A stretch of DNA of 64,000 bases from Bugula neritina (taxonomy: Eukaryota; Animalia; Bryozoa), in assembly GCA_964035545.1 (NCBI GenBank), contig OZ037769.1:7545929-7609928 (forward strand), given 5' to 3'. The stretch's first letter is position 1. Each line of letters opens with the position of its first letter. The translations under genes were made by a program, and so were the position numbers. Shown here piece by piece: positions 38,998-50,198 of this stretch. The notes below the pieces were generated by a model, which was not told where the DNA came from, ran no database searches, and worked only from the letters and a program-made list of their open reading frames with translations.

Positions 38998-41900
38998 ATG
39001 GAAAAGTAAACTTAGCTCTTCCTATCAATAATGTATACTTGCTGTTAAAAATTATACTGTGCTGTTTGTTACCTGATATTCTTATTTTGTTGCAATAGCC
39101 CAGTGTTGAAGATGAAAGTAAGCTGCATGTAACGAGAGTCATAGATATAAGCATGTTATTGTAGAGGTAAAAAACCTGGTAGCAGGAAATCCTTGTAGTC
39201 TAACTATTGTTAGCAAGATGCTTTATGTCTTTCATGTTTTATTATATATTGCAATTTTTTTATTTCCATATTTCATATTATAACTGAACTTGTAACGAAC
39301 TACACTGGAGAGTCACTTTATAAATATGCATTTATTCAGTGAAATTTTCTACTCTCAAACTAAGAATCAGAAAGCAACATACAACATCAAATAAAATACC
39401 AGATCTTCGAAGTTAGAAATAAAAAAGAGTATACAAAAATAATCTTATGTACAGCTTCATAGGATGGGGTCCTATGAAGATTAGAACAAGCTTACAGTTC
39501 AAGGTACTTCTAAGGTCGGGTTCCTTATTTGCTATTGTAGCCATGCTTAATCATCATCTCTGTTTAGAAAGTTTGGGATTTTTACATTCATAATTCCTGT
39601 AAAATACAGCTAAAGTGTATATATAGATAAGATATAGTTATACTATAATGCAGTCATGAGCTAGGAATATGTCAGCTGCAATTGCATAATCATCAATTTA
39701 CAAAAAATGATTAATATATTTCACTTTAGTATAACATACATTGCTCAGATGCACTAAAGGTAAGCACCATCAAACTGTACTGGAGTTCCATCAGCAAACT
39801 ACTTTAAATGCTGCCAAAAGCTGGAAGTCCTTGTAAAATGTAAAGGAATCTAAAATTATACAACCAAATGCAATATACTAATTATCTACATGCATATATA
39901 ATATGCAATGTATATAATAATGTATATAGTATATACACCTATATAATGTAGAATCAGTCAACAACCAGTATATTACACTAAATACTATAATAAATAATTA
40001 TATAATATAGATATTTTACTTACCAGTCACAGCTCTTTAGGAACCCAATACATCCCACATCTACATGAGATTATAACTTGTAAATCTCAACTCCAGTCTC
40101 ATAGGTCAACCACTCAACTCACACTTTTATACTCTGGAATCTAACACAGCCTCATAGCTTTGTGCTTTCAGAACAATTAAAAGCTCTGCATCCTTCAGTG
40201 ACACAAACACAAAGCAATGAAAGCTGACTAAGTAAAGCTGAAAACTGGAAAAAATTAATGAACTTTGCATTTAATTGTCTTCATAACTCCAAAATTGTAA
40301 TTTTTAGGTGTCAAAAAATTTTTAAAATCAAGTTTTTGCTGCATTTTGAATTCTCAATTAATAAAACTTTTTATTAAATAATAATTTGTAAACTCTAATA
40401 TGTACATGATTTAAAATTATTAAGGTAATGTCATATGCCTTGGCTTCACACAACTTCTTTTTATTTGATTAATTCTAAATTTTGCCTTTTTCTGTGCACT
40501 CAACCATGTTGTTCACAAGCTAATAAGTTATGTTGAAACTTTCCCTATTTCAAATTAATCCAAATACATAATTATATGTCATTCAGTATACATCTATCTC
40601 TAACCACAAAAAATACAATGATACGATTCCGATTAATCTTTAATAAAAACTTACATAAAAACTATAAACAATTATTATAAAATGATATAATTCAGGAACA
40701 CATTTGTAGTAAAAGTGCATTTATTTACAAGAAAAAACATAAAACCAACCAAATTGTATACAAATTCTTTATTGTTACACAACTGCAAGCTATTTCAGCT
40801 CCTGATACAACCGCAATTTACAAACATTTTACCATTTCTAAGAAGAATTACACTAAATACCTAATTTATTACAGTTGTGCAGCTTATGCTAAGGGTGTGC
40901 ACAACTCTAAGTTAAAAATTTCCAAAGTTTGAAGTTGTAGTTACTGCAAATTTAAAGTTTTACATTTAGCTTGTATTCCGACAAAGTATTTCACTTGAGT
41001 ATATTGCATTAGAACTACCTCGGCAATCAATTTCTGTTAGTGAATCATCCATCAAACTAATATAAACTTTGGCAATTATTTCAGTGTTATTCCAAATAAA
41101 TGACCCCAAATATTGCTATCAAATATATCTGCAGATGATATTGAAATATACTTTAAAATTTGAAATTGAATGAACATAATTTAAAGGAATAGTTAAAAAA
41201 ATGATATTATATTATATTCTTTTAAAAACACTATAGGCATCCTATTGATGATGACTTTAGTAAACTGTTACAGCAATGGTTTCAATGAGTCATATTATGC
41301 ATATGGCTTCAGTTATTTACCTATCCATGGCTTCAGTTAGACACATGTGCACATAACTGCTATTGCTGTTTAAAATGTGGTCAATTATATGTTTTCCTTG
41401 TGATTAAATACAACCCACTACAATTGTGAGTTTGAATGACATTATGCAATTTCTTGGTATATTATTATATAAATATATATTATCATGTAGTACAAAAGTA
41501 ATCATTGTATCTTTTGAGGTTAAAAATTGATGAACAAAGAATAACGCGATAGATTTTCTTCAAACATTTAAGAAGCAGAGGGGAGGGGGGAGGGTGGGTA
41601 GGAGGAGGTTCTCTTTAAAGAAATACAAAGTTTGAACATGTTGCACTAGTTTCACACATATCAGTAGTATTGCAAGAGCAACCCAGCTTCAGCTCATGAA
41701 AAGAGGTATTTATTATTAACTTAATTATTTTAAATTTTTACATATTAATAGGATTTGGAAAAGCTTCCCCCCTAAAAGTTAAAATTTAGCAACAAACCAG
41801 CAAAGATATTTCTAAAAATATTTCAGATTTATAAGTTACAATTCAACTATAAAAATTATGGAGAAACTAAAGTAAAAAGCAGACTTCAGCTGTTAGCTTT

Positions 41901-43147
41901 ACATGTTGGGCTTTTTTATCACTTTTCAGCTTTTAGCTCTACATATTCAGCTATTTTCACTTAACATTTTCAGTGTTCAGCTTTACTTAGTCAGCTTCAT
42001 TGGCTTTGTGTTTGTATAACTGAAGGATGCAGAGCTTTTAATTGTTATGAAAGCACAAAGCTATGAGGCTGTGTTAGATTCCAGAGTATAAAAGTGTGAG
42101 CTGAGTGGTTGAGTTATGAGACTGGAGTTGAGATTTACAAGTTATAATCTCATGTAGATGTGGGATGTATTGGGTTCCTAAAGAGTTGTGAATGGTAAGC
42201 ATAGTAATATCTATATGTATTATATATTTATTAGTTATATATACTGCTTACTCAGTGTAATATACTGGTTGTTTACCGATTCTATATTGTATAGGTGTAT
42301 ATGTTATATACATTATCATACTATACTTATTATTATATACACTGCATATTACATTTGGATTATTATATTGCAATAATACAGGTAGATAATTATTATATTA
42401 TATTTGGTTGTATAATTACTGATATATTTAATTTTAGATTCCTCTACAAGGACTTCCAGCTTTTGGCAGCATTTAAAGTAGTTTGCTGATGGAACTCCAG
42501 TACAGTTTGATGCTGCTTACCTTTAGTGCATCTGAGCAACGTATGTTGTAGTAAAGTGAAATATATTAATCCTTTTTTGTAAATTAATGATTATGCAATT
42601 GCAGCTGACATATTCTTAGCTCATGACTGCATTATAGTATAACTATTTCTGAACTATATATAATACACTTAAGCTGTATTTTACAGGAATTTTGAATGTA
42701 AAAAGCCCAAACTTTCTAAACAGAGATGATGATTAAGCATGGCTACAATAGTAAATTAAGAACCCGAAATGAGAAGTACCTTAAACTGTAAGCCTGTTCT
42801 AATCTTCATGGGATCCCATCCTATGAAGCTGTATATAAGAATTATTTTTGTAAACTCTTTTTTATTTCTAACTTCAAAGATCTGGTATTTTATTTGATGT
42901 TGTATGTTGCTTTCTGATTCTTAGTTTGAGAGTAGAAAATTTCACTGAATAAATGTATGTTTATAAAGTGACTTCCCGTGTAGTTCATTACAAGTTCAGT
43001 TAAAACATGAAATATGGAAACAAAATAAATCAAAATAATAAAACATAAAAAGTATAAAGCATCTTGCTAACAATAACTAGACAACATGGACTTCTTGCTA
43101 GCAGATTTTGTACCTCTACAATAACATGCTTATATCTCTATGACTTC
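38998..43147. repeat. Palindromic unit 1: arm A1 (~38998-40250), spacer B, inverted arm A2 (~41975-43147)
   Basis: For example tttaggaacccaatacatcccacatctacatgag (~40036) is the reverse complement of ctcatgtagatgtgggatgtattgggttcctaaa (~42149). Similarity extends over more than 1 kb. Confidence 0.92.
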
Positions 43148-49170: not shown

Positions 49171-50198
49171 TATATATATATATATATATATATATATACA
49201 TATATATATATATATATATATATATATATATATATATATATATATATATATATAATATATAATATATAATACATAACTCTTATAATATACAGCTTCCCTC
49301 ATTTTTTTATTGAACCTTTATCATCAAAATCTCTATCCATCAGCTCAAACATTTAGTTGGTGACAGTAGGAAACTCCCCCAGAAAGAATGGTCATAGCTC
49401 TCATGACATGAGTTACATATACCCCCTAAAATTATTCCTCCTGAGTCACTTTTTAACAACTCTTTGTTCATCACTTTGATACAAACACTGGCTGTCTCTA
49501 AATTTAATATAGCACTCCGTTAAATTGAAAATAAGAAATGCTCATCAAAATTCGATTGTGAGACACAGGCATTCACGTAAGAATCTAAAAGCACAATATC
49601 ATTGTAATAAAAATAAGTTTATTAATGTCATTAGAATCTATATCAACTTGTGTAGCTATTGGAAGATTATTTGCTGCGTACTAAGTTTTTGTGTACTGCC
49701 AATGTTAGTATTCATCTCTCTTAATCAGCCATTGTGAAAGACTGTTATTATTTTGTTTCAACATAAAAGAACTTCTGCAGCTTGCTAGGGTTGGACTTCC
49801 TAGGCTCTAAATTGTACAAGTGTTATACTTATAATAGTTATATGTAAATATGTTTGATTGGAATAGTTATTTTTAGTAAAAATCAAGGGCCAATACTACT
49901 AAATGTACGCTATTTGAGATTTGTATTGTTGCATACTAATAGCATACATTATATCTGTATAATGTTAACATCTGTTTATGAATAATTTAATGTATATAAT
50001 ATTATAAATAAAAATTGCAGTACAGATGGTACCCCACAAAACTTCATAAGTCATGAACAAAACACAAACATAACATTTTCTGAAATATTATGTAACATTT
50101 TGTTTCAAAGATGCAACATTTTTTCAAAGTAATAAACATTACTAAATAGAGAACAGAGCTGCCTCTAGAAAGCAATAATAAGACAACTAGTGTAAAGT

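Follow-up and report, generated by a model that had tools for sequence, protein, structure and literature searches.

A nested palindrome in the Bugula neritina genome and the gene-like, probably non-coding units in its arms

The window analysed here, a 64,000-nucleotide stretch of the genome of the bryozoan Bugula neritina, contains at positions 38994-49068 (locus 1) a palindrome nested within a palindrome, and the question it raises is what kind of element or gene such an arrangement represents. Most likely the locus is an ordinary kind of gene cluster, the curious part of which is an almost invariant 174-nt block.

Repeat architecture of the locus

A repeat search and gapped BLASTN self-comparison identified four arms (A1-A4) of 1.2-1.7 kb each in alternating orientation (Table 1). 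Pairwise identity of A1-A4 in the gapped self-comparison was 84-95%, with E-values as low as 0, and within the window the arms are complementary to one another at 84-95% across 0.7-1.2 kb. The two spacers, each of 1.7 kb, are mutual reverse complements: 41464-41956 aligned to the reverse complement of 45640-46115 with 82-84% identity, and 40457-40871 to that of 46610-47002 with 70% identity (BLASTN self-comparison). S1 itself has no palindromic structure. In A4, weaker homology extends inward, down to 47151. The nested palindrome of about 10 kb with four alternating arms that had been described in the initial annotation is real, with coordinates within about 20 nt of those computed here, and both short pairings quoted there for the reverse-complementary spacers lie inside the above alignments; the tail of its interval (49169-49295) is only a (TA)n microsatellite. 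Misassembly is an unlikely source of the palindrome, because the arms differ by 5-15%, the sequence contains no Ns and the B. neritina assembly (216.00 Mb) was produced with hifiasm from PacBio HiFi reads at 132x (PMC11480708).

Table 1. Features of locus 1 (window coordinates; exon boundaries and transcription directions are predictions)
Feature	Position	Strand	Parts and remarks	Basis
Arm A1, gene copy 1	38994..40262	- (leftward transcription, predicted)	conserved block from 40193; TATAAAAG 40131; exon 1 ~40101-40024; exon 2 39849-39740; exon 3 39596-~39312; AATAAA 39336	alignment, self-comparison
A1 3' flank			~300 nt common to copies	
Spacer S1	40263..41955	.	asymmetric: L part adjoins A1, R part adjoins A2	
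S1 insertion	~41085-41355		dispersed repeat, ~270 bp	
S1 G-rich tract	41573-41605		found at locus 1 only	
Arm A2, gene copy 2	41956..43145	+ (rightward transcription, predicted)	conserved block from 42025; TATAAAAG 42087; exon 1 ~42117-42194; exon 2 42438-42540; exon 3 42687-~42972; AATAAA 42948	alignment, self-comparison
A2/A3 tail-to-tail gap	43146..44022	.	centre of large palindrome; 0.9 kb	
MITE-like palindromic element in A2/A3 gap	43525-43829		305 bp; high-copy across genome	
Arm A3, gene copy 3	44023..45655	- (leftward transcription, predicted)	conserved block from 45584; TATA 45522; exon 1 ~45492-45415; exon 2 44873-44771; exon 3 44621-~44336	alignment, self-comparison
Spacer S2	45656..47365	.	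reverse complement of S1: R' part, then L' part	
Arm A4, gene copy 4	47366..49068	+ (rightward transcription, predicted)	conserved block from 47423; TATA 47485; exon 1 ~47515-47592; intron 1 889 nt; exon 2 48482-48584; exon 3 48730-~49014; AATAAA 48990	alignment, repeat search
A4 intron 1 microsatellite	47680-48440		compound (TA/TG)n, enlarging the intron	

Gene-like anatomy and conservation of the arms

The anatomy of the arms was read from an alignment of nine copies, A1-A4 together with the copies Ba-Be of a second locus, outward from each spacer. In every copy a TATAAAAG box precedes a predicted exon 1 of about 78 nt, which ends in AATG with the donor GTAAG directly behind it. Exon 2 (103 nt) is bounded by TTTTAG upstream and GTAKGT downstream, and exon 3 (about 285 nt) has the acceptor TTTTACAG and ends at a conserved AATAAA and then a GT-rich element, the 3' end of the block reading AATAAA, about 20 nt and then GTGTAGTT. 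A regular-expression search found that all the signals (the TATAAAAG box, two GT donors, two AG acceptors, and AATAAA with the GT-rich element) are retained in nine of nine copies, and they stand in a consistent order and strand. The edges of conservation coincide with the splice sites: about 99% conservation runs from 62 nt upstream of TATAAAAG to GTGAATG at the exon 1 donor (GTAAG) and collapses directly past it, the second conserved block is delimited by TTTTAG and GTATGT or GTAGGT, and the third begins with the G after TTTTACAG. Intron 1 ranges from 174 to 889 nt among the copies and intron 2 is constant at about 110 nt; the GC content is 34-35% in exons versus 16-30% in introns. The neighbouring armadillo-repeat gene has the same intron signals (GTAAGT and TTTTAG). 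Transcription start and cleavage sites were placed by consensus spacing. A gene model on the opposite strand was rejected, since in the alignment Bc and Be lack its donor and A2 lacks its acceptor.

Constraint across the nine copies follows the exon and promoter pattern (Table 2). The 174-nt block composed of promoter and exon 1 is 96-100% identical in all nine copies, from which we infer purifying selection. For an lncRNA it would be unusual to have promoter and exon alike conserved at nearly 100%, which tells against such a product; the constraint on this block, in copies whose introns are 25-30% diverged, exceeds what lncRNA genes usually show.

Table 2. Sequence identity of the parts of the predicted gene
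Part	Within locus 1	Within locus 2	Between loci
Promoter + exon 1	.96	.97	.96
Exon 2	.97	.89	.89
Exon 3	.94	.80	.81
Intron 2	.93	.72	.75
Intron 1	.78	.73	.69

Database searches were made exon by exon, and ORF lengths were listed on the joined exon model. No ORF is conserved among the nine copies, as frames and lengths differ and several are broken. No ORF of at least 120 aa was found in the locus except microsatellite artefacts (ORFs 47860-48533), and a Pfam search with the long ORFs of the window gave no match within the locus. The statement in the initial annotation that no recognisable gene explains the structure does not hold in so far as each arm resembles a complete small transcription unit. 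Word searches returned nothing, or one frameshifted relative, JGI sequence P0001, which has a frameshift-like middle; words taken from the antisense frame of exon 1 gave 0 candidates, and exact-pattern scans with exon 1 and exon 2 gave 0 matches among metagenome contigs, a set that may lack records of this or a near genome.

Searches for known structured RNAs were likewise negative: Rfam gave 0 matches in the whole window at the gathering score and sub-threshold noise only for one arm at a permissive E<=10, and a tRNA scan of the window found 0. A mir-3146-like match at 41994-42069 was dismissed; it scored 25 bits against a gathering score of 96 and corresponds to an inverted repeat that precedes the TATA box. 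Exons 1 and 2 have no significant RNA structure (z = 0.13 and -0.16, respectively), and exon 3 has only a mild signal (z about -2) without covariation support. Three classes of small-RNA gene were tried and discarded: a Pol III or snRNA-type gene, as the T-run terminator is not consistent among the copies; an intronic snoRNA in intron 2, as C- and D-box-like words vary between copies in the alignment; and a miRNA precursor in exon 3, where the conserved hairpin stem has just 10-14 bp. A bacterial promoter and terminator scan, which has no bearing on animal DNA, gave fewer sites than shuffled sequences did.

Copy number, second locus and homogenisation

A genome-wide search found the arms at just two loci in 216 Mb, both on contig C5 and about 4 Mb apart: locus 1 (C5:7.585-7.595 Mb) with four copies (A1-A4), and locus 2 (C5:3.580-3.593 Mb) with five copies (Ba-Be) and a remnant. 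The 174-nt block has exactly nine genomic matches in 216 Mb, with 96-100% identity, at these two loci on C5. Beyond them, the whole-arm search gave only one 59-nt match, which is at chance level, and the spacer is unique in the genome except for the inserted 270-bp dispersed repeat. Locus 2 consists of the same pair-plus-spacer unit, again in alternating orientation; identity among its arms is only about 75%. Across the five units, every spacer is asymmetric and homologous to the others (67-82%), with the orientations S1+, S2-, Sa+, Sb-, Sc+.

In the arm tree, A1-A4 form one clade with support of 100/100 and arms never cluster by spacer side, although locus 2 contains a separate counterpart for the L half and for the R half of the spacer. 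Among A1-A4, intron 2 is 90-94% identical versus 54-82% for the spacer halves, in agreement with the earlier observation of greater conservation in arms than in spacers; intron 1 is conserved no better than the spacers. For some flanks of locus 1 the closer match lies in locus 2 and not in the partner at the same locus: the L part of S1 is 74% identical to Sc versus 54% to S2, and the 3' flank of A4 has a 76% match to Bc. Because the arm tree clashes with the spacer homologies, a locus-specific homogenisation of A1-A4 by gene conversion is suggested, as judged from short segments (intron 2 is about 110 nt). The initial annotation had invoked gene conversion or selection; the exon and promoter pattern speaks for selection, and the clash between arm tree and spacers suggests homogenisation.

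Competing readings and known systems

The explanation that we regard as probable is that each arm is a small Pol II gene, and that the arms form a lineage-specific, lncRNA-like family arranged in divergent pairs. Each gene would read outward, away from its spacer, from a TATA-box promoter through three exons of about 78, 103 and 285 nt to a canonical poly(A) site, and A1<-S1->A2 and A3<-S2->A4 would be two head-to-head gene pairs. The second pair-plus-spacer unit would be an inverted copy of the first, the family having grown via inverted duplication of this unit; once the unit had been duplicated, gene conversion would have homogenised the four arms of locus 1. We infer that transcription and splicing of the units follow this model. 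They would most likely yield a polyadenylated RNA of about 470 nt after splicing, either an lncRNA or at most a micropeptide RNA, and the gene family is most likely bryozoan-specific and apparently non-coding. An exotic-looking 10-kb nested palindrome would thereby become an annotated cluster with four copies of an undescribed, lineage-restricted and probably non-coding gene, and would illustrate, in a little-studied phylum, how a divergent pair that is duplicated in inverted form and then locally homogenised may generate palindromes within palindromes. A more specific proposal, which we consider improbable, is that the invariant 78-nt exon 1 and its promoter are the functional module of a bryozoan-specific regulatory RNA. 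Exon 1 would then serve as a sequence-specific guide, a decoy or an unconventional leader exon, and convergent read-through between neighbours (A2 -> <- A3) would give dsRNA acting on the family, a feedback that would keep the arms in alternation.

The same transcription units could be protein-coding, encoding a fast-evolving family of small secreted peptides or micropeptides with conserved UTRs. Most copies have an ATG in exon 2 with a mildly hydrophobic ORF of 17 codons (MELQYSLMLLTFSASEQ), the ATG at the end of exon 1 is invariant, and many copies have in common a start within exon 3, M-x-T-I-A-N-K-E-P, where Bb and Bd have lost 3 nt in frame. However, the 17-codon ORF is broken in Ba and Be (TAG at codon 4), shortened in Bc by a 14-nt deletion, and in eight of nine copies ends where exon 2 joins exon 3; a 13-codon ORF from the exon 1 ATG has about 4 synonymous versus 8 non-synonymous changes; the ORFs of exon 3 vary in frame as well as length, and many indels there have a size not divisible by 3; and the frameshift-like middle of the related P0001 points the same way. 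We judge a coding family unlikely. Quite unlikely, too, is a hairpin-RNA or endo-siRNA locus, in which a transcript across two opposed arms would form kb-long dsRNA to be diced into small RNAs. In its favour, arm complementarity of 84-95% extends beyond 1 kb, and A2 and A3 converge across a gap of only 0.9 kb, so that failed poly(A) termination would give sense/antisense overlap. Yet each arm, in nine of nine copies, has its own TATA promoter facing outward and its own poly(A) site with conserved AATAAA and GT-rich elements, and the four primary transcripts would therefore be of the same sense and non-complementary, barring read-through of the gap. Conservation is patterned by exon and intron and is not uniform along the arm, and the arms of locus 2, at about 75% identity, are poor material for long dsRNA and nonetheless retain the signals. 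The hairpin-RNA reading is not the simplest one.

Neutral decay of a functionless inverted segmental duplication, with gene-like signals arising by coincidence, would accord with the lack of a known family and with the AT-richness of the sequence, where words resembling TATA and AATAAA occur often. It is very improbable, as the introns are 25-30% diverged and yet the 174-nt block is 96-100% identical and six processing signals are kept, with conservation boundaries exactly on splice sites, a pattern that neutral decay does not give. The initial annotation had also proposed two copies of a foldback-type transposon (A-B-A') with kb-long TIRs, and long inverted arms around a unique middle, in more than one instance in the genome, do recall such an element. 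We consider it extremely improbable. The genome-wide search found only two loci, on one chromosome, with no dispersed copies of arm or spacer; the dispersed pieces are limited to the 270-bp repeat in S1 and the MITE in the central gap. The outer ends are unequal (A1 ends at 38994, A2 at the equivalent of 39137 and A4 at that of 39261), and in the absence of a common arm terminus a TSD cannot be defined. The arms have no sub-repeats, tandem structure occurring only as the microsatellite in one intron; a transposase ORF and a Pfam match are both absent; and the arms hold a promoter, splice sites and a poly(A) signal.

Among known systems, FB-type transposons share with the Bugula locus the long inverted arms flanking a middle segment, but the latter has few copies, no TSDs, defined termini or sub-repeats, and arms with promoter, exon and poly(A) anatomy. 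Hairpin-RNA loci of the Drosophila type have one promoter reading through both arms; the kb-scale inverted repeats, able to pair if co-transcribed, are alike, whereas in Bugula every arm comes with a separate outward promoter and a separate poly(A) site. The resemblance to SL RNA genes lies in a multi-copy family with an invariant promoter and a 5' exon ending in AUG at a conserved GU donor, immediately past which conservation falls; flatworm SLs likewise end in AUG. Unlike SL RNA genes, the Bugula units have conserved cis exons 2 and 3 with their own acceptors and poly(A) signal, an exon of about 78 nt and only nine copies, and exon 1 has no match in the 216 Mb genome beyond these nine. An SL RNA gene was rejected, as a regular-expression search of the 110 nt after the donor found the Sm-binding site (RAU4-6GR) in none of the nine copies. 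The literature searched contained no report of SL trans-splicing in Bryozoa.

Divergent multi-copy gene pairs are known from histone genes, Drosophila hsp70 at 87A and silkmoth chorion genes. As in these, copies of one small gene stand head-to-head on either side of a common upstream spacer, and the repeating unit is the pair; the Bugula spacer differs in being 1.2-1.7 kb long, asymmetric and poorly conserved, and the product is not recognisable. Palindromic ampliconic families, such as those of the primate X and Y chromosomes, have arms of 10 kb to Mb that are more than 99.9% identical. The Bugula arms are only 1.2-1.7 kb long and 84-95% identical, their genes look non-coding, and those of locus 2, unlike ampliconic palindromes, are no longer homogenised. 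Common to both are gene copies in inverted arms around unique spacers, arms more alike than the spacers or flanks and, at locus 1, an arm phylogeny decoupled from that of the spacers, as expected from gene conversion. There is moderate support for placing A1-A4 in a palindromic ampliconic family with gene conversion, the segments compared being short and intron 1 not showing the effect.

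Palindromic organisation of locus 1

Repeat search and gapped BLASTN self-comparison of the window recovered all four alternating arms (A1 to A4) that had been claimed at this locus (locus 1), with pairwise identities of 84-95%. The spacers between A1 and A2 (S1) and between A3 and A4 (S2), described in the initial annotation as mutually reverse-complementary, did align in this way: 41464-41956, in the half of S1 adjoining A2 (R half), is the reverse complement of 45640-46115 at 82-84% identity, and 40457-40871, in the other half (L half), is that of 46610-47002 at 70%. The coordinates of that annotation were off by ~20 nt at most, and the final 130 nt of its interval is (TA)n microsatellite. 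The 10-kb structure is a single large palindrome of a 4.15-kb unit, which is itself an inverted pair, and its centre lies in the 0.9-kb tail-to-tail gap between A2 and A3. The Bugula neritina Darwin Tree of Life assembly was built from PacBio HiFi reads (132x) using hifiasm (PMC11480708); the window occupies positions 7545929-7609928 of contig C5 in an assembly of 216.0 Mb. The 5-15% divergence among the arms, together with the absence of Ns, makes misassembly improbable.

A ~270-bp dispersed repeat, with at least 40 scored copies (74-85% identical) across all chromosomes, is inserted in S1 and absent from S2, which accounts for the unalignable middles of the two spacers. The central gap holds, in the middle of the large palindrome, a 305-bp palindromic (foldback) MITE-like element of high copy number (1,235 first-look candidates, many of them paired inverted ~230-bp halves with 85-92% identity). 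A ~230-bp interspersed repeat, probably a SINE or MITE, occurs five times in the window with 73-80% identity. Pure (TA)n tracts lie on both sides of the cluster; tracts of this type are cruciform-prone and could have favoured inverted duplication. The cluster sits in a ~14-kb intergenic region upstream of a multi-exon armadillo/HEAT-repeat gene, whose product we take to resemble SPAG6/PF16, and a WD40-repeat gene. A 2-kb segment of the window reaches 55% G+C versus ~33% in the rest, and two ORFs had no Pfam match.

Features of the window (for arms, the sign gives repeat orientation, not transcription)
Feature	Position	Strand
Arm A1	38994-40262	+
Arm A2	41956-43145	-
Arm A3	44023-45655	+
Arm A4	47366-49068	-
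Armadillo/HEAT-repeat gene	50745-53125	-
WD40-repeat gene	57753-58242	-
ORFs without Pfam match	11242-11805, 12020-12418	
G+C-rich segment	12001-14000	
~270-bp dispersed repeat	~41085-41355	
305-bp MITE-like element	43525-43829	
~230-bp interspersed repeat	37212-37442, 21990-22182, 23316-23549, 27801-28019, 59567-59746	
Pure (TA)n tracts	38686-38755, 49169-49260	
Compound microsatellite, A4 intron 1	47680-48440	
G-rich tract	41573-41605, 45983-45998	
Poly(A)-signal palindrome	39312-39345 and equivalents, e.g. 42940-42972	

Copy number and anatomy of the predicted transcription unit

Genome search found whole-arm matches at just two places in the genome, locus 1 and C5:3,579,684-3,592,865 (locus 2), ~4 Mb apart on the same contig (C5). 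Locus 2 contains five arms of alternating orientation (Ba to Be) and a 157-nt remnant of a sixth. Apart from the inserted dispersed repeat, S1 is confined to these two loci, and a 174-nt block comprising the predicted promoter and exon 1 has exactly nine matches in the genome, every one 96-100% identical.

When the nine copies from both loci were oriented from the spacer outward and aligned, conservation was sharply modular, with three blocks. Block 1 (~99% identity) begins 62 nt upstream of TATAAAAG and reaches GCTGTGAATG and the donor GTAAG, dropping off immediately past the donor; block 2 (~103 nt) lies between TTTTAG and GTATGT or GTAGGT; block 3 extends from TTTTACAG/G to AATAAA, followed after ~20 nt by a GTGTAGTT element. 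All signals are kept in nine of nine copies. With the transcription start set at TATA+30, the predicted exons are ~78, 103 and 251-321 nt. Intron 1 ranges from 174 to 889 nt, being enlarged in A4 by a 760-bp compound (TA)n/(TG)n/(TATG)n microsatellite, and intron 2 is nearly constant (143-156 nt); G+C is 34-35% in exons versus 16-30% in introns. The intron signals GTAAGT and TTTTAG are also used by the adjoining armadillo-repeat gene. A gene model on the reverse strand was rejected: the acceptor is lost in A2, and in both Bc and Be the donor is GC or absent. In each copy the poly(A) signal is embedded in a conserved, perfect palindrome of ~30 nt, CACTGAATAAATGCATATTTATAAAGTG, read as AATAAA in one direction and as a TATA-like word on the opposite strand.

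Sequence identity of segments within and between the two loci
Segment	Within locus 1	Within locus 2	Between loci
Promoter + exon 1	.96	.97	.96
Exon 2	.97	.89	.89
Exon 3	.94	.80	.81
Intron 2	.93	.72	.75
Intron 1	.78	.73	.69

Coding potential and RNA structure

The nine copies have no conserved ORF. Ba and Be carry an interrupted version of the 17-codon exon-2 ORF and Bc a truncated one; substitutions in a 13-codon ORF from the ATG at the end of exon 1 follow a roughly neutral pattern; and the ORFs of exon 3 differ among copies in length and reading frame, with many indels whose size is not a multiple of three. ORFs were listed on the joined exon model, and database searches were made without it. 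The antisense frame of exon 1, used as query in a word search, gave no candidate. The 43-codon exon-3 ORF of A1 had a sole match in the word search, P0001, a 45-aa ORF on a 5.4-kb JGI metagenome contig, in which the ends are identical and the middle is frameshift-like. P0001 is a tenth, distinct copy of the family (exon-3 sequence) from another sample, presumably containing bryozoan host DNA, and likewise evolves in the manner of non-coding DNA. Exact-pattern scans of metagenome contigs for exon 1 and exon 2 found no match.

Rfam gave 0 matches over the whole window at the gathering score and noise only for one arm at E<=10, and the tRNA scan found none. Exons 1 and 2 showed no folding advantage over shuffled sequence (z = 0.13 and -0.16). 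Exon 3 showed a modest one (z about -2) in two copies ~20% divergent, whose folds have in common a long-range closing helix and the conserved palindrome at the poly(A) signal; no covariation support for exon 3 came from RNAalifold.

Nature and history of the cluster

We consider it fairly probable that the arms are members of a lineage-specific family of three-exon genes, probably non-coding and arranged as divergent pairs, the most likely explanation of the sequence data. The initial annotation had offered, as one alternative, a foldback-type element with kb-long terminal inverted repeats; this was rejected, as many dispersed arm-spacer-arm copies were not found genome-wide and two loci only is a copy number unlike that of a transposon. 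A hairpin-RNA locus, in which transcripts crossing opposed arms form dsRNA, is less likely: it is possible only via read-through, but each arm has its own predicted promoter and poly(A) site. Neither an Sm-like site nor a consistent T-run follows the first donor, an argument against an SL RNA or a pol III gene.

Across all five units the spacers share homology (67-82%); they are asymmetric, L and R halves having no mutual match, and alternate in orientation (S1+, S2- at locus 1; Sa+, Sb-, Sc+ at locus 2). These features indicate that the ancestral building block was a divergent pair of genes together with the L-R spacer between them, and that this unit was multiplied by inverted duplication. 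The G-rich, G-quadruplex-type tract GGGGAGGGGGGAGGGTGGG, present in the R half of S1 and S2, is missing in the homologous spacers of locus 2. At locus 2, Ba has no partner gene; the spacer R half directly joins the 157-nt remnant of an arm's outer 3′ flank (C5:3582823-3582979), so a deletion took out almost exactly the transcription unit.

Gene conversion would later have homogenised the transcription units at locus 1. In the arm tree A1-A4 group as a clade with 100/100 support and a star-like interior, and arms never group by spacer side, in conflict with the spacers. Among A1-A4, identity is 90-94% for intron 2 versus 54-82% for the spacer halves. Some flanks are nearer to locus 2 than to their local partner: the L half of S1 (74% to Sc versus 54% to S2) and the A4 3′ flank (76% to Bc). 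Quartet-informative sites within arms are few. Concerted evolution confined to the transcription unit is therefore proposed with moderate confidence, given the shortness of the segments and the lack of any such homogenisation in intron 1. At locus 2 the five copies are no closer to each other than to locus 1, indicating that locus 2 is without ongoing homogenisation; purifying selection is accordingly the best reading of the near-invariance of the 174-nt block across the nine copies. Of the two causes offered earlier for the similarity of the arms, gene conversion or selection, both seem to apply, given this invariance and the arm/spacer discordance. As a structure, the cluster belongs to a recognised type, the palindromic cluster of multi-copy genes.
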